Source: Diplonema japonicum
Lineage: Eukaryota; Protista; Euglenozoa: Diplonemea
Assembly: GCA_964019335.1 (NCBI GenBank)
Contig: OZ025677.1
Coordinates: 372,001-436,000 of the forward strand
Reading direction: 5' to 3'
Length of the DNA stretch: 64,000 nucleotides
Shown: in pieces, positions 32,985 through 41,771 of the stretch
Layout of the letters: each line of letters begins with the position of its first letter
How positions within the stretch are numbered: position 1 is the stretch's first letter
Translations under genes and position numbers: made by a program
The notes under the pieces: generated by a model
Database searches by the model: none
The model's input: only the letters and a program-made list of their open reading frames with translations
What the model was told of the DNA's origin: nothing

Positions 32985-34271
32985 TTACAACTTGGCTCTG
33001 GGGCCCATGGACGAAAAGTCCCACGTTTTGCCGTCTTCGTAAGCCCTGAGGACCAGCCTCCCGACAGTGGTGATGTGGACCTCGTCAGGACCGTCATAGA
33101 ACCTTGCTGCCCTTGCGTTGCGGTACATCTCCCCGAGTGGTGTGTCATCAGTGAGTCCTGCAGCCCCGTGCACCTGCACTGCTCGATCAAGTACGCGGCA
33201 CAGTGCACGGGCACCCCACGCCTTTACTGCAGCCAGTTCGACTCTTGCATATGTGCCACTGTCCATTTTCTCAGCAGCTGCCATGGTCAGCAGCCTCAAA
33301 GCGGAGATGTCGCAGTACGACTCGTAAACATGTTCCTGCATCAGCTGTTTGGTCCCAAGGTTCCTGCCGCGCAGCTTCCTCGTCACCAACCTGCTGCACA
33401 TCAGGTCGAATGCTCTTTGTGCCTGCCCCAGCCACCTCATGCAGTGAAAGATTCTGCCGGGCCCAAGACGCTCCTGGGCAATCAAAAAGCCCAAACCCCT
33501 CTTCCCTATGAGGTTTGTGACAGGCACCCTCACGTTGTCGTAGATCACTTCGCTGTGGTTGCCGCCGTGTGTGCCCAGCACATGTGTCGAGCGTTGGATG
33601 TTGTACCCAGGAGTGCAGGTGGGAACCAGAATGATGGAGAATGCCAAGTGGGGGTCGGACGGCTTCTGTTCAGTGCGTGCCATGACGCACGTATACTCTG
33701 CGAACCCTGCATTGGTGGTCCACCACTTTCTGCCGTTGATGATCCACTCACTGCGGTCTTCAGACAGCACGGCGCTGGTGGAGATCCCTGTGGGGTCGGA
33801 GGACACGACATCGGGCTCCGTCATCGCGAAGCTCGGGTAAATGTCAGCACTCACTAGTCGCTTGAGGTACTTCTCCTTGATTGCGTTAGAGGCATGGTTG
33901 TGGAGCATAAGGGAGTCCTGCAGAGAGTGTGTTCCCAGAGCGCCTTGGGCCAGCTCGGACCTTCCTTGCACCTCATTGACATAGATGTAGTCCCGAAAGG
34001 GCATCCCCTGACCGCCGATTGATTTCGGGTGGCCTAGCGCCCACAAGCCCTCGGCTTTAGCTTTTGCCTGCAGCTTACTAACCTCGACCATTGCCACCTT
34101 TATCGCCTCTGCTTCCCCGTGTACTTTGAACACCTTGTGCAGCCTATCTTCTAAAGGGTAAACATCATTCTCGACAAATTTCAGCACCTTGTCTCGGATA
34201 GGTTTTACATGTGCGGGGACAGTGAACTTTGCGTCCGTAACCTTTGCTTGCAAGTTCCAAGATGTCGCCAT
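32985..34271 (-). CDS. Acyl-CoA dehydrogenase, ACAD10/11-like standalone domain with PTS1
   Basis: FAMTEPDVVSSD, INGRKWW, AQERLGPGRIFHCMR, QVHGAAGL, FYDGPDEVH and C-terminal AKL. Likely ATG at 34271 (MATSW). Confidence 0.93.
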   Translation of the reverse strand: MATSWNLQAKVTDAKFTVPAHVKPIRDKVLKFVENDVYPLEDRLHKVFKVHGEAEAIKVAMVEVSKLQAKAKAEGLWALGHPKSIGGQGMPFRDYIYVNEVQGRSELAQGALGTHSLQDSLMLHNHASNAIKEKYLKRLVSADIYPSFAMTEPDVVSSDPTGISTSAVLSEDRSEWIINGRKWWTTNAGFAEYTCVMARTEQKPSDPHLAFSIILVPTCTPGYNIQRSTHVLGTHGGNHSEVIYDNVRVPVTNLIGKRGLGFLIAQERLGPGRIFHCMRWLGQAQRAFDLMCSRLVTRKLRGRNLGTKQLMQEHVYESYCDISALRLLTMAAAEKMDSGTYARVELAAVKAWGARALCRVLDRAVQVHGAAGLTDDTPLGEMYRNARAARFYDGPDEVHITTVGRLVLRAYEDGKTWDFSSMGPRAKL

Positions 34272-34485
34272 CGTCTTCTGTGTGCGATGAACGGGACAAC
34301 AAAGAGGGTAATAAGATATCTTTATAAAATAGTTGAATAGAATAACAAAGAAGTAAAGAAATAACGTAAACGAACAACTAAAAAAAAAGGCTAACACGCT
34401 TGCCGACGATTCGACAACGGAGGGTGACTAAAGACCTATCGGATGCAAGAACAACGGAGCTAGGAATATGGCTAGAGGTGATAGG

Positions 34486-37400
34486 CTACGTGGCTTCAAC
34501 TAAGCCGTTCCATTTATCTGATTCGACAGGATCCCCGTCCACGGGGCATGGCTGTAGCGTGTACATGCGCTGCAAGGCGTCGGCCTGTGCCTGGACCACA
34601 GCACGGAGACGAGCGTTTTCGTTTTCGAGGATCTCCACACGCGACTGCACAGTCCGGGTAATAGTGCGTGCTCTAGTCCACGTCCTTCGTCGGACAGTGT
34701 CGGTGGACCCTGGAGTGTCCCTCCACGGGCCTTTGAAAGACGTAGCGTATCTGAACCCGTCTTTGCAGCCAGACAGGTCTTTCACCGCCCAGTCACCCTG
34801 CCACGCCCACCCCGGTGGACACGGAAATCCTTCTTTCTTTCTTGACTGCACTCCTGACTCGTCGCTGAAGGCAGGCGGATCACCCAGTGCCATCGTCATG
34901 GACCACCCTATCATCGGAAACCACCTCTGATTCTCCACAACAGTCACACACCAACCCTTGTCGTCGAATGGGAGGTAGTCATAAAAGGCACGCAGTCCTC
35001 TCTCCAGACCCTGTTCTGTTGCGATCTGCGTGCTGAGCTCCTTGGCTTTCTCAGACATCTCTGGTGTAAGAGCCTGCATCATAGCCTTCGCAAGCAGCTT
35101 CCCTGTAATGCTCTTATAACTGACAGGTGCTGGCCCAACGCCTTGCCGCTCACAGCACCTTCCCCAGAAAGGTTGATCGCCAAAGAAGGGGACTACTACA
35201 GTAGGAACACCTGCGTTTAACCCCGCAGCAGTGGTTCCTGCACCGCCGTGATGGACCACTGCGTTGCAGCGAGGGAACAGCCAGTCGTGCGGACACTTAT
35301 CGAGAAGAAAGATGTGGTCAGGAAGACTGCCCTCATACGATGACCCAAGGTTGGCCCAGCCAGGGGTTATAATGACCCGAAGCTGTGGATATATTTCATG
35401 CACTAAGTCAATTGCCGTGAATACTGCCTTCTCCAAGACTGACACCTCCTGAACTACAATAGAGCCGAACCCGATGTACACAAAGTAGCCATCGGAGGCA
35501 AGAAACCTTGCCAGCTCCGGGCTGGGTGTATAGCTTTCCTTTTCGTTTAGGAACCAAAAACCGGAGATAGAGATGTGCTGTTCCCAATCTGAAGGCCTTG
35601 GTACTATAGCCTCGGAGATGCAGTAGATATGAGGAGTATTAAGGGTATGTTGGATGCCTGCACCGTGTCGTAGCTTATGCAGCCCAATGGCCTCCCTGAA
35701 ATTGTTGATTATGTCGCCCATGCCGAGCCACGTCAGCTCCTCGACGATGCCGTACGACTGTTCGTTGCCGAAAACAGAGACCATTGCCAAAGGGTGGCGG
35801 TAGGCCTTCGTGGGACTCCACGGCATGGTGAAGAAGATCTGGAGCGGGATATGCAAAGCTTCTGCGATATGTGCATGAACAAGGACAGGGGGGTTGCTGA
35901 TAAGTACATCCGAAGACCATGTGCTGGCCTCTGTCCAGGCATGCTGGAACACTTGTGTCATCATAGACCTCTTAGCGCGAACTTCCTCGAGATGTATCGT
36001 GAGCATCGAAGGGTGTTCGACCATGAATTTCATAAGCGCTTCTGGGTCGCCCCCGATGGCCCCGAACTCGATGCCCCTGGATGTTACAAAGGTCTCGAAG
36101 CACGGGTGCGTCACAATTTTGACTGTATGCCCGTCTTGCTTCATCCGTCGAGCCATCGCCACGAAAGGCTGCACGTCTCCCCTCGAGCCCACCACCAGCA
36201 TGCACACCCTGAGACTGGGGCCCTTCCCAGAAAGGTACACGTTATCAGTGATTCTCAGGTGCTTGTCCTCAATGGTACGCAAGTATGCATGCTCGAAAGA
36301 GTGTTTGGATATAGTGTATTCATTGACCCCATGTGTGCTCTTCAAAGCCTCCAGCATGTCAATGAGCTTAGCGAGACCCATGCTGCCATGCACTTTGAAT
36401 TCCACATGCTTTTGATAAAACTCCATTTCTGCACACTCAGGGACAGACTCGACAAGGTGGTCACCAAGGGCGGGTGTTTGCTCACTGCAAGAAACCCGTG
36501 CAGTTACGAAGTAACCTGACGCATGTTGTTCTTTGAGGGCTCCCGTAGAGCCTACGGTCGTCAGGTTTCCTTGTACCATGACCCCCACATCTGTGCATGC
36601 GGCGTCTGCTTCTGTAAGGGAGCACGTTGTCAAGATGATGATGGGTGGGTCAGGTCGGCTGCTGACATCGCCTATAAGCCTCCAAGCTACTCTGCGCATG
36701 TAGGGATCCATAGCAGCCGTCGGTTCATCCAGCACGAGGACCTTAGGTGACCCCATCAGGGCAAGGAGCAGGGCCACAAGCCTCTTTAGACCTCCTGACA
36801 AGCTGTCGCACGTTGCACTGGCATATCCTGCAATACCCGCTTCTGCGAGGAGGCAGCGAACCCCATCGACACTGGCACCTTTTATGTTCCTAAGCTTTGC
36901 ATAATCTAGAAGGACGCGCTCCACAGAAAGTTCAGGAGGCAGAGGGTCTGTCTGAGGTAAGTATCCAACAAGCTTGTGCATCTCCTTGAGCTGAAGCGGG
37001 TGGAGATTCGTCAGGCCATTTAGTGTTACCTCGCCCTGTGATGGAGGAAGCAAGCCGGCTATCATGCGCATTGCGGTGGACTTCCCGGCCCCACTCGGAG
37101 AGATTAACCCGAAGCACATCCCAGGTTTCAGCTTGAGATACATCCCAGACACAGCAACAGTACTGCAGTACACCTTGCGGAGCTGGCGTACGAAAAGGGA
37201 CTTCTTGTCAGTGCCGCTGTTGAGTTCCACGTCACGCATCATGTCTGTCACAGACTTATCGGGGTTAAGGCCAAGTTTCACGGCCTCACCCATGTAGTAC
37301 CCATCTGGACGGGGGAAGCATCTCTTGACGATGTTCTTCAGCTTGTAACTGCTCTCTCCTACCATTAGCATCACGGACCAAAAGACAAGCTGATATATCA

Positions 37401-40400
37401 TCCCCAGAATGTTACCCGAGATTGCTTCCATGGGACCTAATCCTATCTTATGCAGCGCATCGTGCTTGCGCCTGTCCCCATACGCCAGGAAGTACATCAC
37501 AGAATCTGCCATCAATGACAGCGGTGACATGTTCTTCAACACATTATCCCTTTCGTTTTCTAGCCCGATATCTCTGATGAACTGGTTGGCAACTACGTAG
37601 TGGTAGAACACAAAGAATAGTGTCGCATGGGAAGGGCTAGTGAACATGAAGCCCACAGCGTAACCTGATGCGATCACAGCAGGGGAGTAGGCAAGGAAGG
37701 CCGCGAGGAGAGCCATGATAATGTTTTTGTCCCAGAACATATTACTGTACAAGCAGATGAACAATAATGTTACGAGGTTAATGACCATCAAGGCAAGCAC
37801 GTCGCTGAGACCCTTCGCAACATAAAAGGTCGTGTCGTGCACGCCACATAACTGCGACAGATGCCTTGCTCCGTTCTTTCTTTGTGCCACCAGCCACCCG
37901 ACAAAGATCCCACTGCAACTTGACAACGCTGTCAGTAGCAAGGCCGCGAACCCATAGTTCACAACCGCAGCGGGCTCCGGCACGCCAGGGAAGACTCCAA
38001 TCGTGCCTTCAATTATGTCGTGGCCTTGTGCCTTCCTCATCAGATTCCCTACGTACTGCACAGCAAAGGGCACCCCGTAGGACACGCTAGCATTGAACCA
38101 GATGTTCACGGACTGATTGTCAACTACTTCAAACGCAAAGGGCGTGGAGTACAGGATGACGTCTTCAAAAGATCCAGAGTACCTCACCGCGTTCAGCAAC
38201 CCACCGAAAGGCAAGGCTTCTATGAGATCCATGTATTCGTTAGCCCCAGGCCCTCCAACGAAGACAGCAGACGGGTCGGTAGCTGTCATGTTCGGCGAGA
38301 GCAGCACTGGAGCAGGGACAGGATCTTCGTTCCGGTAGGGCGATGAGGTGACCGCACAGAGCAGAGTGAACATAGCAATGAATTGATACACGAAGAACCC
38401 CCGTGAACGCAGGGTGGAGGCCGTCTTTTGCCACGCGATGAACAGTACCTGCTTTGGGATTGACAAGAATTGTGCAGGGCTTGTGAGCAAGGCAGCTTGT
38501 ACCCCCACGCGGCCTCCATTGAACATCTCAAGCAGCGGGATGTCGATTTCGTTTTCGGGCAGGCGGTACCCTACAGCAGTTCCCGTCATCTGATGCCCGG
38601 ACAGTAGCAGATCTTCGAAACTTGCTAAACGAATGGAAAAGGACTCTACATCGAGCACCGCGCACTCCGAAGTGTTCTCCAGGATCTTAAACAGGGGACC
38701 GTACCCTTGTAAGCCTTTTTGCGTCTCCGGAAGTGCGATGCTCAGCTGCCTGCCGGTAGCCGTGTAGTCATAATCGAAGGAGTTCGAGAACCTCCCGACA
38801 ACGCTAAGGATAGGCTCGTTGGGTGTGTGCATGTGGTTCTTGACAATGTCCAAACGTTGCCCATGATTGAACGAGTTCTTGATTTCCGCAATAGTGCCCA
38901 CATTCGCAGGAGGCAGGCAGCCTTCGTACATCACTGCCACAGAATCAGCAAGATACGCCTCATCCATCTGGTGCGTTGTGTACAACACAGTGCAATTCTT
39001 TCTGCTGCTGATTAGCGACCACACCTGCCGTCTGGAGTGCGGGTCCAGACCTGCCGTGGGCTCATCTAGGATAAGGATGGGAGGATCCCCGGCTAGAGCA
39101 AAGGCAACACTGAGCTTTCTCTTCTCGCCGGTTCCCAGGTTCTCAGATCTGTGCGTCAAGTACTTCTTCAGCCCTACCTCCTCGGCTGCCTTTTCTGCTC
39201 TTGCTGCAACTTCATTGTATGGCACTCCTTTCAAAGAGCACGCCAGCCCCAAAATCTCAGCAACTGTGAGGTCCGTCAACGGCAAATTCTGCTGAGGAGA
39301 GAACCCAACCAATCCTTGCCCGCACGCATCGGGCACTTGCAAGCCATATAGCGAGGTCTCACCAGAACACGTGATGCACCCGGTCAGTGCCTTCAGCAGT
39401 GTAGTCTTCCCGGCACCGTTGTGACCAAGCAAAGCAAGTCGCTCGCCACGCGCTACTTTGATATTGATACGTTTCAAGATCTCTCTTCCCTTAATCCTGA
39501 AGAACAGGTTGGAGGCAGCGACACCTGGAGACTCACCAGGGGGCTGCTGCTCGGCCTTTATCGGAAACAGCAACGGGTTCGACTTATACAACGCGCCATA
39601 GATCCAGAAGGTGAGGATGCTGTAGAGGACTATGTCGAAGACCAACATCCCTGCTATGGGGGCTAAGCCAGGGTTGCCACCGATCTCTGCGTCAGCAGGG
39701 TAGTACTTCGTTGACTGCTCATATGAGATGGAGAGCGACCCGAGGCACAACGCAGCGGGAGGGAACAGCGCTACGAACTGCCACCCCACGAAGCAATTGG
39801 AGTCGGGGACGATGCTTTGGGGGCCGTAGTTCTCACAGGTTCCCACAAAGATGCCTGCTCCACCTGTGAAATAATAGATTGCAAAAGAAGCAGCGGTTGC
39901 TGCCACAGTTTCCGTCGGCATGAAGAGCGAAAGGAACCCGCAAAATGATGGCAAGGAGAGCATAAAAACGGACAGAAACAACCATATTCGCACAGCACAG
40001 CCGGGCAAAAGAAGTGAGTCGATTCCCAAAGCGAAGAGGGGTAAGCAGACAAGCTTTGGGCCTAACTCATTGATCAGGAAGGTAGTTAGGTATGCTGCTT
40101 CGGACATGCCATTGGCATCGAGAAAGCCCCTTACGTCGTTGAAGAGGTACCGTCCCGTGCTGAAAAGAGTCCGCACGAAAGGGAGAGTAAAGGTGCCCAT
40201 TATTAGGAAACCGGCAAGAGGTTGTACAAGATAAAGCATGACTCGGCACTGAGCGATCTTCTCTATATCGACGTGCCCAGGGGCGGAGTACCGCGTGATG
40301 TTGATAGACGAAGTGTCGAGAAGGGTGGAAGAGTTGCTGAGGGCAGCCTCCAGCACAAGCTGGAAGAGGAGAAGGGAGTTCTGGAAAAAGGGCTTAGAAG

Positions 40401-40977
40401 CCGTGGACACTTCGCAGTAAGCAGGTGCTCTGAAGAGCTCATGACTGCTACCCTTCGTGTATATAGTGTATGAGGTACGAGATGTGATAACGACTGCCGT
40501 GTTAGTTCGATGTGCAGCACGATACCACCTCTGCCATTGATACCAAGAAACATCAGTTGGATTCACGTAAGAGAGCATTTCTTCCGGCGAGTCCCACACC
40601 CGAAAGCCCAACGTATTGTTCTCTACGTCTCGTATGTCCCGTTTCAGCTTGTTTATCACGTCTTCAACGAGTTCAATATCATGCCCAGTCAGCCACATCT
40701 CGTCATCGTTTTCTTGTTCATTATCTGGCGGTAGCACCGACACGCCAACCTTGCTCGCGTTCTGGTACGTCGGCCATCCTGCATAAAGCGGTAGGTCCTT
40801 CTCCCTCTTCTTCGCGTCTTCTCGCAGGACCGGGATCGTGCAGTACCAGAATAAAAGCAACATCGCAGGAAAGAATAACTCACTAAAAACCAAAGCCCTA
40901 CTCAGCTTCGAGGAACCCCATCTGCGGTGCAGGATCCATACATGCGGGACTTGCTTCACGAACGCACGCCAGCCCAT
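34486..40977 (-). CDS. ABCA-family full transporter fused to a UGT51/UGT80-type sterol 3-beta-glucosyltransferase and a DysF domain
   Basis: Two TMD-NBD halves (GHNGAGKT..LDEPTAGLDP; SPSGAGKS..LSGG..LDEPTAAMDP), then VGSRGDVQPF..FTMPW..HHGGAGTT..PFFGDQPFWG, then ENQRW..GW..PPGWAW..W..DGFRYA..VRRRTWTR. Single uninterrupted ORF. Confidence 0.92.
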   Translation of the reverse strand: MGWRAFVKQVPHVWILHRRWGSSKLSRALVFSELFFPAMLLLFWYCTIPVLREDAKKREKDLPLYAGWPTYQNASKVGVSVLPPDNEQENDDEMWLTGHDIELVEDVINKLKRDIRDVENNTLGFRVWDSPEEMLSYVNPTDVSWYQWQRWYRAAHRTNTAVVITSRTSYTIYTKGSSHELFRAPAYCEVSTASKPFFQNSLLLFQLVLEAALSNSSTLLDTSSINITRYSAPGHVDIEKIAQCRVMLYLVQPLAGFLIMGTFTLPFVRTLFSTGRYLFNDVRGFLDANGMSEAAYLTTFLINELGPKLVCLPLFALGIDSLLLPGCAVRIWLFLSVFMLSLPSFCGFLSLFMPTETVAATAASFAIYYFTGGAGIFVGTCENYGPQSIVPDSNCFVGWQFVALFPPAALCLGSLSISYEQSTKYYPADAEIGGNPGLAPIAGMLVFDIVLYSILTFWIYGALYKSNPLLFPIKAEQQPPGESPGVAASNLFFRIKGREILKRINIKVARGERLALLGHNGAGKTTLLKALTGCITCSGETSLYGLQVPDACGQGLVGFSPQQNLPLTDLTVAEILGLACSLKGVPYNEVAARAEKAAEEVGLKKYLTHRSENLGTGEKRKLSVAFALAGDPPILILDEPTAGLDPHSRRQVWSLISSRKNCTVLYTTHQMDEAYLADSVAVMYEGCLPPANVGTIAEIKNSFNHGQRLDIVKNHMHTPNEPILSVVGRFSNSFDYDYTATGRQLSIALPETQKGLQGYGPLFKILENTSECAVLDVESFSIRLASFEDLLLSGHQMTGTAVGYRLPENEIDIPLLEMFNGGRVGVQAALLTSPAQFLSIPKQVLFIAWQKTASTLRSRGFFVYQFIAMFTLLCAVTSSPYRNEDPVPAPVLLSPNMTATDPSAVFVGGPGANEYMDLIEALPFGGLLNAVRYSGSFEDVILYSTPFAFEVVDNQSVNIWFNASVSYGVPFAVQYVGNLMRKAQGHDIIEGTIGVFPGVPEPAAVVNYGFAALLLTALSSCSGIFVGWLVAQRKNGARHLSQLCGVHDTTFYVAKGLSDVLALMVINLVTLLFICLYSNMFWDKNIIMALLAAFLAYSPAVIASGYAVGFMFTSPSHATLFFVFYHYVVANQFIRDIGLENERDNVLKNMSPLSLMADSVMYFLAYGDRRKHDALHKIGLGPMEAISGNILGMIYQLVFWSVMLMVGESSYKLKNIVKRCFPRPDGYYMGEAVKLGLNPDKSVTDMMRDVELNSGTDKKSLFVRQLRKVYCSTVAVSGMYLKLKPGMCFGLISPSGAGKSTAMRMIAGLLPPSQGEVTLNGLTNLHPLQLKEMHKLVGYLPQTDPLPPELSVERVLLDYAKLRNIKGASVDGVRCLLAEAGIAGYASATCDSLSGGLKRLVALLLALMGSPKVLVLDEPTAAMDPYMRRVAWRLIGDVSSRPDPPIIILTTCSLTEADAACTDVGVMVQGNLTTVGSTGALKEQHASGYFVTARVSCSEQTPALGDHLVESVPECAEMEFYQKHVEFKVHGSMGLAKLIDMLEALKSTHGVNEYTISKHSFEHAYLRTIEDKHLRITDNVYLSGKGPSLRVCMLVVGSRGDVQPFVAMARRMKQDGHTVKIVTHPCFETFVTSRGIEFGAIGGDPEALMKFMVEHPSMLTIHLEEVRAKRSMMTQVFQHAWTEASTWSSDVLISNPPVLVHAHIAEALHIPLQIFFTMPWSPTKAYRHPLAMVSVFGNEQSYGIVEELTWLGMGDIINNFREAIGLHKLRHGAGIQHTLNTPHIYCISEAIVPRPSDWEQHISISGFWFLNEKESYTPSPELARFLASDGYFVYIGFGSIVVQEVSVLEKAVFTAIDLVHEIYPQLRVIITPGWANLGSSYEGSLPDHIFLLDKCPHDWLFPRCNAVVHHGGAGTTAAGLNAGVPTVVVPFFGDQPFWGRCCERQGVGPAPVSYKSITGKLLAKAMMQALTPEMSEKAKELSTQIATEQGLERGLRAFYDYLPFDDKGWCVTVVENQRWFPMIGWSMTMALGDPPAFSDESGVQSRKKEGFPCPPGWAWQGDWAVKDLSGCKDGFRYATSFKGPWRDTPGSTDTVRRRTWTRARTITRTVQSRVEILENENARLRAVVQAQADALQRMYTLQPCPVDGDPVESDKWNGLVEAT

Positions 40978-41120
40978 CGAAGCAGTCTGAGGATATGTTC
41001 GGTGAAAAAATACATAAGTTCTGAAAAAGAAATGAAAAAGATACAACAAAAAGAAATCTAATCATCGATGTGAGTCATCGAGTTGTCGAGTCGTTCCACC
41101 TGTACGGTGACAGGATGCTA

Positions 41121-41771
41121 CTACCTGCAGAGATGATTCAAAGGATTCATGCCCACAGGCTTCCCGACAGTGTAAGGCAAGGCAGGTGTCAAGAAGCCTG
41201 AAGGATCCTTGTAAAGATACTCGTCACATGACTGTGGTTGTGGTTGTGGTTGTGGTTGTAATTGTGGTGGTGGCAGTGGTTGAGAACCCGACGGCTCGCT
41301 TCGCCTCCTGCCCCGCGCAGGGTGCGGAGTGTCTATGCGTACTCGGTAGGTAGGTGCTTGAAACTTCTCCTTCGAAGCAACAGGATGAGGTACCTTCGGT
41401 GCCGCCCTTTGAGGTGAATGTGCCCTAGGCCCCCTTCCCGTCTCCATCTTTGCCGGGACCGAAGTAGGCCTCTCACACGTGATGCACTTATCTGTCCTAC
41501 ATATGTGGCATATCCATCTATGCCCCTGTTTCTCCGCTCTGCACCAATCACACCGCCACCCTCTCCTGTACTCACCTTGGTCATAACTTGTCACTTCCAT
41601 CGTGTGCCCATTCAAACAAACCACACCAGCAGGTGTTTTAACCGGCAGCGTTGCAGGCTTCTTCGGAGTTCCCCTCGCCACACTCGAAGATTGCCTCCTC
41701 GGGCTTCGAGGAACCTGCACCACCTTGGGCTTCGTGGGCAACGGTTCCTTTTTACTCCCGCACGTGCCCAT
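41121..41771 (-). CDS. Putatively myristoylated/palmitoylated ZZ-like zinc-finger protein
   Basis: N-terminus MGTCGSK. CLNGH..WRCDWC..RWICHICRTDKCITC. Pro/Gln-rich tail. Confidence 0.75.
   Translation of the reverse strand: MGTCGSKKEPLPTKPKVVQVPRSPRRQSSSVARGTPKKPATLPVKTPAGVVCLNGHTMEVTSYDQGEYRRGWRCDWCRAEKQGHRWICHICRTDKCITCERPTSVPAKMETGRGPRAHSPQRAAPKVPHPVASKEKFQAPTYRVRIDTPHPARGRRRSEPSGSQPLPPPQLQPQPQPQPQSCDEYLYKDPSGFLTPALPYTVGKPVGMNPLNHLCR

Follow-up and report, generated by a model that had tools for sequence, protein, structure and literature searches.

The window analysed here, a stretch of 64,000 nucleotides from the marine protist Diplonema japonicum, carries on its minus strand an authentic, expressed gene for a single membrane protein of 2163 aa, in which a full-size ABCA-type (type V) transporter at the N-terminus is joined to a UGT51/UGT80-type glucosyltransferase (GT) and a DysF domain. 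The preferred reading, held with a probability of roughly 60%, is that of an authentic single-chain fusion in which the GT glucosylates a membrane lipid, the ABCA part translocates the product and the DysF domain anchors the enzyme, and which originated by fusion of a GT-DysF(-C2) gene with an ABCA gene.

Gene structure, transcript and assembly

The open reading frame (34486..41049, minus strand) has no internal stop, encodes 2163 aa from its first ATG at 40977 and ends in a TAG codon at 34486-34488 (minus strand); the gene is without introns. The preliminary description had claimed one stop-free frame of about 2160 aa, composed of a complete ABCA, a join of about 20 aa, an intact-looking UGT51-type GT with the motifs GSRGDVQP, HHGGAGT and PFFGDQ, and a DysF domain. 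This composition was borne out by Pfam and PDB sequence matches, all three motifs were found in the GT part, and the coordinates given for the frame and the domain borders were correct within a few codons. The domain order is TMD1-NBD1-R1-TMD2-NBD2-R2, the linker, GT1, DysF and a terminal helix, with Pfam matches to ABC2_membrane_3, ABC_tran (two stretches), Glyco_transf_28 (1592-1726), EryCIII-like_C (1883-1984) and UDPGT. The features are as follows.

34489..40977, minus strand: complete ABCA-GT-DysF coding sequence, 2163 aa (ORF, Pfam, identical EukProt protein)
39538..40977, minus strand: TMD1 and extracellular domain 1, residues 1-480 (hydropathy, ABCA homology)
38878..39522, minus strand: NBD1, residues 486-700 (Pfam, motif alignment)
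38578..38877, minus strand: R1 regulatory-type region, residues about 701-800 (position, alignment with the fusion family)
37333..38460, minus strand: TMD2 and extracellular domain 2, residues about 840-1215 (Pfam ABC2_membrane_3 at 951-1127, hydropathy)
36523..37215, minus strand: NBD2, residues 1255-1485 (Pfam, motif alignment)
36280..36522, minus strand: R2 regulatory-type domain, residues 1486-1566, ending ...FEHAYLRTIE (alignment of nine fusion proteins)
36220..36279, minus strand: linker of about 20 aa from the ABCA part to the GT (alignment of nine fusion proteins)
34966..36219, minus strand: UGT51/UGT80-type GT1 (GT-B) domain, residues 1587-2004 (PDB sequence match, AlphaFold2 (AF2)/Foldseek, active-site columns)
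34660..34956, minus strand: DysF domain, residues 2008-2106 (TECPR1/ferlin matches, Pfam Pex24p, AF2)
34558..34641, minus strand: C-terminal amphipathic helix, possibly a coiled coil, residues 2113-2140 (AF2 helix at 554-581 in a model of 604 aa)
34332..41009, minus strand: mature mRNA, approximate extent (one RNA-derived contig of 6678 nt; 5' end extrapolated)
34278..34279, minus strand: spliced-leader acceptor (AG) of the next downstream gene, outside the fusion (20-nt loose end of an RNA contig)

EukProt, where the named diplonemid entries are ORFs of Trinity transcriptomes, contains an identical protein of 2163 aa. The 6678-nt RNA contig was aligned on 34332-39300 and extends 1709 nt further, about to the ATG, giving a 3' UTR of about 154 nt and a 5' end extrapolated to lie no more than about 45 nt from the ATG; AGs that may serve as spliced-leader acceptors are located behind a pyrimidine tract at 41022-41021 and 40988-40987. 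Positions 36200-36300, singled out in the preliminary description as the place where RNA should cover the junction, are crossed by this contig without a break, joint or loose end, and no spliced-leader or end signal between the ABC and GT parts is seen in it. The same data do show the leader on the neighbouring gene, which is represented by a separate RNA contig ending at 34278 and carrying a 20-nt spliced-leader remnant (reverse complement TACAGTTTCTGTACTTTATT). The genome contains this 20-mer 217 times, and in the four copies that were aligned it is part of a conserved 39-nt unit. The transcription unit of the fusion is bounded on its 3' side by the acceptor at 34278..34279.

That the frame results from a mis-joined assembly, or from adjacent genes of a polycistronic array that happen to read through, is hardly credible. 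Read-through ORFs are conceivable, as the neighbouring genes all share one strand and are separated by short spacers; however, the RNA contig ends at the fusion gene's own borders, and the whole stretch of the gene, junction included, is spanned with zero differences by one DNA contig of 15.9 kb and another of 21.5 kb (the stretch is present in runs of two studies, and the difference-free contigs come from two runs belonging to one of these studies). Together with the same join in three paralogues and many orthologues, these contigs led to rejection of the artefact, including the mis-join that had been raised as a concern at the outset.

Domains of the fusion protein

By hydropathy, TMD1 comprises TM1 (about 28-46), a loop (about 47-245) and TM2-6 (about 246-460), and TMD2 comprises TM7 (about 860-878), a loop (about 879-1010) and TM8-12 (about 1012-1206). 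After residue 1206 hydropathy gave no transmembrane-like segment, the sole later hydrophobic window being the Walker B strand of NBD2, which places GT-DysF together with NBD2 on the cytosolic side. In NBD1 the Walker A (GHNGAGKTT), Walker B (ILILDEPTAGLD) and H-loop His are all canonical and the signature is degenerate (LGTGE); NBD2 has a canonical LSGG signature and a canonical Walker B (VLVLDEPTAAMD), its Walker A reads SPSGAGKST and Cys stands instead of the H-loop His. Judged by these motifs, the ABCA part has one consensus ATP site and a degenerate second one. No Pfam match was obtained in the R1 region of the window copy; Pfam R1_ABCA1 (PF23321) matches the R2-equivalent stretch in one paralogue (C62) and is recorded for several orthologues.

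In each of the nine fusion proteins aligned, the reading frame stays open through the linker, whose length is conserved and which was modelled by AF2 as a low-confidence helix (pLDDT 48-67). That GT-DysF is freed from the ABCA part by internal trans-splicing, internal initiation or linker proteolysis, giving two proteins from one ORF, is very unlikely. The low model confidence of the linker and an in-frame Met at the GT start (VCMLVVG) are consistent with it, and the RNA evidence consists of assembled contigs, which lose rare isoforms, so that minor isoforms may have escaped and a single mRNA molecule is not provable from the RNA contig. Against it, the RNA run that reveals the neighbour's leader has no loose end or joint inside the fusion gene, the linker frame is open across deep divergence in 11 of 11 fusion sequences placed by alignment or BLAST, linker length is conserved, and the ORFs are continuous in the transcriptomes of seven named species.

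The GT part matched yeast UGT51 (5gl5) with an E value of 1e-79 in a PDB sequence search. An AF2 model of 604 aa (mean pLDDT 89.8, pTM 0.85; about 95 pLDDT in the GT domain) had 5gl5 as its best Foldseek match (E 2e-37, TM 0.85). The active-site residues G751, D752, S847, S998, H1069, T1074, D1093 and Q1094 of UGT51 (PMC10381798) correspond to G41, D42, N136, S280, H351, T356, D375 and Q376 of the window GT, and each of the eight columns is either invariant among 50 homologues or conserved to at least 90%. The resulting profile, G-D-N-S-H-T-D-Q, is that of the fungal CrUGT8-10 tabulated in PMC10381798. Judged from these residues, the active site and the set of UDP-sugar motifs are intact.

The DysF part matched the TECPR1 DysF (8p5p) with an E value of 5.7e-10 over 15-111 of 116 residues, as well as those of dysferlin and myoferlin; the Pfam Pex24p/DysF match at 2007-2102 (23.3 bits) falls under the cut-off of 26.8. 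It contains the Trp/Arg stacking motif (ENQRW...GWAWQGDW...RRRTWTR) and was modelled as beta-rich (pLDDT 84-97) and tightly apposed to the GT, with a short low-confidence tail after the C-terminal helix. The Trp/Arg-stacked core is common to the DysF domains of TECPR1, the ferlins and the Pex30 family, which are membrane- and lipid-associated, and the equivalent of R76-W77 is conserved. The residues K152, K153 and W154, which confer sphingomyelin specificity on TECPR1 (PMC10476172), are not conserved in the alignment with the fusion DysF.

Paralogues, orthologues and origin

Three fusion copies of like architecture are present in the D. japonicum genome: the window copy (C30), C31 and C62. The C31 copy (2242 aa, Pfam order unchanged) is 100% identical to the Trinity ORF EP01064_Diplonema_japonicum_P000624 and shares 42% overall identity with the window copy; conservation along the protein is highest in GT-DysF, at 61% versus about 37% identity between the two. 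The C62 copy is intact when two GT-AG introns (48 and 44 nt) are assumed, its exons then adding up to 8214 nt (2738 codons). Of the two Diplonema paralogues in group A, the window copy evolves faster (end branch 0.53 vs 0.14).

Orthologues in other diplonemids, proposed as a check in the preliminary description, were found: the family is diplonemid-wide and forms two old paralogue groups, with the fusion carried, as an uninterrupted transcriptome ORF, by seven named species and present in further ENA assemblies. ABC, GT and DysF were found together in D. ambulator, Rhynchopus humris, Lacrimia lanifica, Flectonema neradi, Artemidia motanka and Namystynia karyoxenos. Outside diplonemids the fusion was not found. 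A junction-spanning search covered both sides only in diplonemid fusions, with scores falling from 339 to 253 bits at the shift to ABCA-only or GT-only proteins, and in a homology search the ABCA part, too, had only the diplonemid fusions as its closest relatives.

Stand-alone GT-DysF(-C2) proteins of the euglenids Rhabdomonas costata, Entosiphon sulcatum and Ploeotia vitrea (730-817 aa) contain the same module, 38-43% identical across both domains, without a transporter and with a C2 added in some. In a quick tree they group with the fusions in a single clade (SH-aLRT 98), and they are likely the ancestral form. The fusion of a pre-existing euglenozoan GT-DysF(-C2) protein with an ABCA gene would predate the Diplonemidae/Hemistasiidae split, and a later duplication of the fused gene would have given the two paralogue groups.

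Predicted function and known systems

Based on the domain content, the fusion most likely glucosylates a membrane lipid, probably a sterol, at the cytosolic face and couples this step to ABCA-driven translocation. The GT would act on a lipid of the cytosolic leaflet beside the transporter's lateral entry, the ABCA part, with ATP, would flop the glycolipid to the opposite leaflet or extrude it from the membrane, and the DysF domain may keep the enzyme on the bilayer, as PH and GRAM domains do in fungal UGT51/Atg26. A sterol is the most likely acceptor because the GT is homologous to UGT51; UGT51-like enzymes show promiscuity, accepting triterpenoids and other alcohols, so acceptor specificity is not fixed by this homology.

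The sterol 3-beta-glucosyltransferases yeast UGT51/Atg26 and plant UGT80 (GT1; 5gl5, 5xvm) share with the fusion GT a GT-B fold (about 37% identity in structural alignment), the catalytic Asp in GSRGDVQP, the HHGGxGT and FGDQ donor motifs and action from the cytosolic side of membranes. Fungal UGT51 makes its membrane contact through the N-terminal PH and GRAM domains and plant UGT80 has neither, whereas the fusion GT is C-terminal to a 12-TM ABC transporter, is followed by DysF and belongs to a separate GT-DysF clade in the tree. The TMD-NBD-R-TMD-NBD-R order, the ABC2_membrane_3 fold and the extracellular domains after TM1 and TM7 are common to ABCA1, ABCA3, ABCA4, ABCA5/8-like and ABCA12. 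Unlike the fusion, described ABCAs are not known to have an attached enzyme domain; the fusion's two extracellular domains, of about 200 and 130 aa, are short, one of its ATP sites is degenerate, and ABCAs from outside the diplonemids match it at only about 25-35% identity, over parts of its length.

The direction of ABCA transport is not readable from sequence, since ABCA4 imports and ABCA1 exports. It is possible, with clearly lower probability, that a real fusion follows a reverse or spatial logic, in which the ABCA part delivers an acceptor lipid to the GT (e.g. a sterol from the outer leaflet or lumen) or fixes the GT at the membrane, and the glucosylated product is then not cargo. The greater conservation of GT-DysF and the euglenid relatives, which function with no transporter and are targeted through DysF and C2, favour this, as does the import known for ABCA4. 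DysF, however, has been kept although the protein is already membrane-embedded. All group A proteins have a canonical Walker A, Walker B and H-loop in NBD1 and a canonical LSGG signature in NBD2, each aligned member retaining one complete consensus ATP site, and the transporter has thus not decayed to a mere anchor; in group B the NBD2 Walker A, Walker B and H-loop are canonical too, which is weaker evidence because the partner signature is degenerate.

A role in detoxification, in which lipophilic xenobiotics or prey triterpenoids/sterols would be glucosylated and the conjugates expelled (phase II and III joined), is improbable. Diplonemids are voracious heterotrophs, the ABCA family is expanded in this genome (at least 20 loci) and fungal UGT51-like enzymes use non-sterol acceptors (PMC10381798). 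The GT-DysF module is nevertheless old, being conserved in euglenids and also in some opisthokont protists, so that a housekeeping lipid role fits better; moreover, known conjugate exporters are ABCC or ABCG proteins, and ABCAs handle membrane lipids.

For glucosylation followed by translocation, a functional parallel is provided by ABCA12, which moves a glucosylated lipid, glucosylceramide. The same logic, by analogy only, is found in bacterial MprF, a lysyl-phosphatidylglycerol synthase and flippase in which a cytosolic lipid-modifying enzyme is covalently linked to a domain translocating the modified lipid (bioRxiv 10.1101/2022.03.11.483950); the folds are unrelated, and MprF is bacterial and has no ATPase. 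As stated at the outset, the ABCA-GT-DysF architecture is not known among characterised proteins, with no earlier description in the literature searched. The fusion suggests a built-in machine that would make the glycolipid and then move it.

The fusion gene and its transcript

The minus strand of the window carries a stop-free ORF at 34486..41049, in which the first ATG, at 40977, opens a reading frame for 2163 aa. This frame encodes a single polypeptide in which an ABCA transporter continues at its cytosolic end, through a tether of about 20 residues, into a glycosyltransferase (GT) that is accompanied by a DysF domain. The ABCA part was matched in Pfam by ABC2_membrane_3 and by two ABC_tran stretches (NBD2 at residues 1278-1421), and the matches in the last 604 residues, referred to here as the GT-DysF part, were as follows.

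Pfam matches in the GT-DysF part, numbered along the window protein
1592-1726, Glyco_transf_28
1883-1984, EryCIII-like_C (UDPGT was also matched)
2007-2102, Pex24p (DysF), 23.3 bits, slightly below the 26.8-bit cut-off

The preliminary description had read the same domain order from the sequence, and its ORF, domains, motifs, and coordinates were all borne out by ORF scan, Pfam, and structure matches, with every quoted motif found. The window corresponds to C30:372001-436000 of the assembly, and every large ORF in it occurs on the minus strand. Of the 20 ORFs of at least 250 aa (1-64000), sixteen are on that strand, and the four others, on the plus strand, overlap minus-strand ORFs; the window thus fits one long unidirectional gene cluster.

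Four public sequencing runs were compared with positions 33400-39300 of the window, a stretch that leaves the 5' end of the fusion gene outside. DNA contigs of 15.9 and 21.5 kb from two runs, one of which may be the source of the assembly, span the whole stretch with zero differences, and the stretch was present in runs of two studies. A third run, X8, behaves as RNA. It contains a contig of 6678 nt that follows the fusion gene over 34332-39300 and continues for 1709 nt more; it therefore reaches approximately 41009, about 30 nt past the ATG, and begins and ends at the borders of the ORF. This contig stays clear of both neighbouring genes (the ORF upstream has its end at 41121), and it has neither joints nor loose ends where the ABCA and GT parts meet; being an assembled contig, it cannot by itself prove a single molecule, and rare isoforms are dropped in assembly. 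The fourth run, X1, from a strain that is 1-2% divergent, gave fragmentary contigs from 34420 to 37152 with pieces on both sides of the ABCA-GT junction; these break at several places, including 36189-36264, and no loose end was seen there. The two events that the preliminary description had named as fatal to the fusion, a spliced-leader or polyadenylation site between the ABC and GT parts and a mis-join in the reads, were looked for in these contigs; the X8 contig contained neither loose end nor joint, and the DNA contigs of the two runs agreed throughout. The window protein is also present letter for letter in EukProt. Mis-assembly and read-through are ruled out by the concordant DNA and RNA contigs and by the retention of the join in paralogues and orthologues, and an artefact as the source of the fusion is effectively excluded.

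A separate X8 contig ends at 34278 with 20 unmatched letters, the reverse complement of which is TACAGTTTCTGTACTTTATT. This 20-mer occurs 217 times genome-wide (0 for the control), and in each of four aligned copies (L015:1485-1523 and one each in the genome stretches L016, L017, and L018) it is embedded in a conserved unit of 39 nt, ACCAACGATTCTAAAGCTACAGTTTCTGTACTTTATTG, which we take to be the diplonemid spliced leader. The contig corresponds to the mRNA of the neighbouring downstream gene. The fusion RNA contig stops at 34332 and the downstream gene has its spliced-leader acceptor at 34279/34278; the spacer between the two mRNAs is thus at most about 54 nt and falls within a T-rich tract. 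The 217 copies of the 20-mer, which forms the 3' part of the leader, are dispersed over most contigs, often close to the end of a contig. Alignment of four copies showed conservation only over the unit of approximately 39 nt, with unrelated flanks and, in one copy, a poly(A) run ahead of it. The copies look unlike a classical tandem SL-RNA gene array; they could be scattered SL genes, or else 5' ends of mRNAs that have been retroposed.

Paralogues, distribution, and origin

A six-frame search of the 62.5-Mb assembly with the GT-DysF part identified two further fusion copies, one each on contigs C31 and C62.

Features of the two paralogous loci
L013:800-7525 (contig C31), uninterrupted ORF of 2242 aa with the Pfam order of the window copy
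393374-393421 of contig C62 (L014:1875-1922), minus strand, predicted intron of 48 nt, GTATGT...ACAG, a multiple of three that carries a TAA
393146-393189 of contig C62 (L014:1647-1690), minus strand, predicted intron of 44 nt, GTGCGC...CCAG, inside the GT domain

Full-length identity of the C31 protein to the window protein is 42%, with about 37% for the ABCA part, 57% for the junction region, and 61% for the GT-DysF part, and its sequence agrees at all 2242 aa with EukProt entry EP01064_Diplonema_japonicum_P000624. This agreement, with the exact window protein in EukProt, assigns the genome to Diplonema japonicum or a nearly identical strain. In tblastn the C62 copy showed one in-frame TAA and a frame change, both inside the GT domain, which give it the appearance of a pseudogene in six-frame searches. 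That status was ruled out, since both lesions fall within short canonical GT...AG inserts. The two inserts are rich in A/T homopolymers and coincide exactly with gaps in the alignment of homologues; on their removal the three exons sum to 8214 nt, or exactly 2738 codons, and over 2434 aligned residues the locus shares 61% identity with a continuous transcriptome ORF of 2692 aa from D. ambulator. On this sequence evidence the C62 copy is judged intact, with two predicted tiny introns in the GT domain and none at the junction.

ABCA genes without a GT are present at no fewer than 20 loci of the genome, with open frames of about 1450-2070 aa. The family is expanded (C37:29855-45746, C28, C52, C82, C43, C70, C115, C31:70665-73922, and others), and several loci form tandem arrays, such as the three copies on C37. 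A fourth GT1 gene encodes a stand-alone protein of 473 aa (C35:71845-73263, plus strand; L008:622-2040). It is far more distant (E 1e-27 to yeast UGT51), lacks a DysF domain, and is possibly a second lipid or small-molecule glycosyltransferase.

Four database searches were performed, using the GT-DysF part in its full-length context, the ABCA part, the junction region, and, in an exhaustive HMMER search, the 604-aa part. All four returned one small set of proteins that combine the ABC, GT, and, in most cases, DysF families, so that orthologues, which the preliminary description had proposed to seek in other diplonemids, were found in Diplonema ambulator, Rhynchopus, Lacrimia, Flectonema, Artemidia, and Namystynia.

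Fusion proteins by source
Diplonema japonicum, three copies
Diplonema ambulator
Rhynchopus humris
Lacrimia lanifica
Flectonema neradi
Artemidia motanka
Namystynia karyoxenos
ENA assemblies, four proteins (P0006, P0008, P0121, and P0380)

In the junction search only fusion proteins covered 99-100% of the query. The next matches reached no more than 60% coverage if ABCA only, or 40% if GT only, with a drop from 339 to 253 bits, and the kinetoplastid ABCAs among them were ABCA-only proteins, none with a GT. No fusion outside the diplonemids was found in the junction-spanning, ABCA-part, or exhaustive GT-DysF searches; large oomycete matches (3636-3711 aa) had other domains and were without an ABC domain. 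BLAST and tree comparisons divided the fusion proteins into two paralogue groups.

Paralogue groups of diplonemid fusion proteins
Group A, about 2160-2570 aa: window copy, C31 paralogue, Namystynia, Rhynchopus, two ENA proteins
Group B, about 2690-2960 aa: C62 paralogue, D. ambulator, Flectonema, Artemidia, Lacrimia

Since both Diplonemidae and Hemistasiidae are represented in each group, the fusion and the duplication predate the split of these families. Alignment of nine fusion proteins showed an R2 domain ending in (S/A)(F/L)E(H/Q/E)(A/V)(Y/F)(L/R), then a linker of approximately 15-25 residues, and then the first GT strand with G(S/T)RGDVQP. The reading frame through the linker is open in all nine, which speaks against a very unlikely rival explanation, the release of two proteins from one ORF.

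The exhaustive search also returned proteins of 690-1040 aa with similarity to the GT part as well as the DysF part.

Proteins with GT and DysF parts
Rhabdomonas costata, two proteins, one with an added C2 domain
Entosiphon sulcatum
Ploeotia vitrea
A Paramoeba transcriptome
Chromosphaera perkinsii
Salpingoeca punica

A quick maximum-likelihood tree separated the GT-DysF proteins, as one clade, from the UGT51/80-type sequences of fungi, oomycetes, and others (SH-aLRT 98), and within this clade the diplonemid fusions nest with the euglenid GT-DysF proteins (support about 90, not starred). In the simplest history, a fusion in the diplonemid stem would have appended a stand-alone euglenozoan GT-DysF protein to the 3' end of an ABCA gene; because the tree came from a short search and is unrooted, this order of events is one that we infer. 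A protein of 1305 aa from the Hemistasia phaeocysticola transcriptome (P0268) has a UGT51-type GT and no ABC domain, so that some diplonemid lineages may keep a conventional long sterol glucosyltransferase too.

Domain analysis of the fusion protein

The ABCA part has two TMD-NBD halves in one chain, with type V membrane domains (ABC2_membrane_3), and its closest non-diplonemid matches in the ABCA-part and junction searches were all ABCAs. The best NCBIfam model for the window protein was the ABCA4-type 'rim_protein', at 297 bits, far below the equivalog cut-off. Hydropathy analysis gave a 1+5 and 1+5 transmembrane pattern, with non-hydrophobic stretches of about 200 aa (TM1-TM2) and about 130 aa (TM7-TM8) at the places expected for the ABCA extracellular domains. 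Nothing membrane-like follows residue 1206, which puts the GT-DysF tail on the NBD (cytosolic) side. The Pfam R1_ABCA1 model (PF23321) matched the C62 paralogue and several orthologues; the window copy scored below threshold, and the equivalent block is conserved in the alignment.

Two canonical ATP sites, as expected of an ABCA, were not found in the window protein, whose NBD motifs fall within positions 36600-39430. Site 1 (Walker A, Walker B, and H-loop of NBD1 with the LSGG signature of NBD2) is canonical in all group A proteins. In site 2 of the window copy the NBD1 signature reads LGTGE, the NBD2 H-loop residue is Cys, and the NBD2 Walker A starts with Ser; elsewhere in group A the H-loop position is Cys, Asn, or Gly in several proteins, His is kept in two, and in some members the Glu of Walker B or the Lys of Walker A is lost. 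The window protein is thus an asymmetric ABCA. In the two group B proteins aligned it is the NBD1 Walker A and the NBD2 signature that are degenerate, and the Walker A, Walker B, and H-loop of NBD2 are canonical. As site 2 is degenerate in group A and site 1 in group B, the asymmetry may have arisen separately in each group.

The GT domain is nearest to yeast UGT51 (5gl5, 5xvm), one of the UGT51/UGT80 sterol 3-beta-glucosyltransferases (GT1, EC 2.4.1.173). The last 604 residues matched its whole catalytic domain (phmmer, E 1e-79 to 5gl5), and an AF2 model of this part (mean pLDDT 89.8, pTM 0.85) has a GT-B fold, with pLDDT of about 95 over the GT, for which the top Foldseek match was again 5gl5 (E 2e-37, TMt 0.85). 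Active-site residues of UGT51 are G751, D752 (the catalytic Asp), S847, S998, H1069, T1074, D1093, and Q1094 (PMC10381798). Their equivalents, in the numbering of the 604-aa part, are G41, D42, N136, S280, H351, T356, D375, and Q376, and among 50 homologues each of the eight columns is either invariant or conserved to at least 90%. The resulting G-D-N-S-H-T-D-Q profile, with Asn for S847, is shared with the UGT51-like fungal enzymes CrUGT8-10, for which the same state is tabulated (PMC10381798). Fungal UGT51 differs in having N-terminal GRAM and PH domains, neither of which was matched by Pfam in the window protein, where the ABCA lies upstream and the DysF domain downstream, and in its place in the tree, apart from the distinct GT-DysF clade of the window GT.

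By homology, sterol would be the first candidate acceptor, and sterol-like acceptors are plausible because a squalene/oxidosqualene cyclase-type gene was found in the genome. Glucose is suggested as the donor sugar by the Gln in FGDQ, in analogy to the PSPG motif of plants. An unlikely rival explanation is that the protein is a conjugate-and-export detoxification unit.

The last 164 residues matched the DysF domain of TECPR1 (8p5p) with E 5.7e-10 over 15-111 of 116 positions, and the dysferlin and myoferlin DysF domains too; the 604-aa part also matched 8p5p in the structure-database search. The Pfam DysF score of 23.3 bits in the window copy compares with 32.1 in the C62 paralogue and up to 49 in a euglenid homologue. 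In the AF2 model a beta-rich DysF unit begins about 7 residues after the GT and is followed by a long terminal helix. The DysF fold is defined by a Trp/Arg stack, and K152, K153, and W154 give TECPR1 its sphingomyelin specificity (PMC10476172). The window protein has the stacking residues, in WxW..DW and RRRxW, along its whole-domain match, and keeps the equivalent of R76-W77 of TECPR1, whereas G-S-T occupies the positions of K152, K153, and W154. A TECPR1-like sphingomyelin specificity is therefore unsupported by the alignment.

Proposed mechanism and significance

The fusion is real and conserved, and the mechanism inferred from it is testable. The GT looks like an active UDP-sugar lipid glycosyltransferase, and the ABCA is predicted to keep one working ATP site. 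We propose that the GT would glucosylate a lipid of the cytosolic leaflet, that the ABCA would then translocate or extrude the glucosylated product, and that the DysF domain would hold the catalytic cleft at the bilayer. MprF, in which a synthase is fused to a flippase, is a parallel to this make-then-move logic, and ABCA12, which handles glucosylceramide, is a parallel to the proposed role. Under a less likely rival explanation the transporter feeds or merely positions the enzyme.

A bolder version of the make-then-move proposal, which we regard as improbable at roughly one chance in four, is substrate channelling. The GT product would pass straight into the ABCA lateral gate, hydrolysis at the single consensus ATP site would be coupled to glucosylation, and the fusion would be a 'Rosetta stone' for a general partnership of ABCAs with UGT80/UGT51 enzymes that moves steryl glucosides, or another glycolipid, across eukaryotic membranes. 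If true, channelling would provide a defined cargo for an ABCA and a tractable model of lipid-cargo entry into these transporters.

Each domain comes from a known family, and the combination is absent from any characterised protein. Within the collections searched, it is confined to diplonemid sequence predictions that carry no functional name. The preliminary description had left room for an architecture that is widespread or already described, and in the material covered it was neither: it was restricted to diplonemids in those collections, and a literature search of open-access texts found no published description. The Paradiplonema subcellular proteome paper likewise contained no matching term in the text or supplements covered.

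ABCA transporters are medically important (ABCA1, A3, A4, A7, and A12), and the selection and loading of their lipid cargo are debated. We know of no established route that takes steryl glucosides from synthesis on the cytosolic face to other leaflets or compartments. The natural occurrence of a conserved covalent link between a UGT51-type enzyme and an ABCA is a strong guilt-by-association hint at cargo, and it opens synthesis and transport to joint study in a single polypeptide. The euglenid GT-DysF(-C2) proteins suggest that DysF can act as a predicted membrane-targeting module of lipid glycosyltransferases, a use that to our knowledge has no precedent in studied organisms. Diplonemids belong to the marine heterotrophic protist groups of greatest abundance and diversity. 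The fusion is a lineage-specific invention of theirs, and the retention of two ancient paralogue groups implies an important role in their membrane biology.
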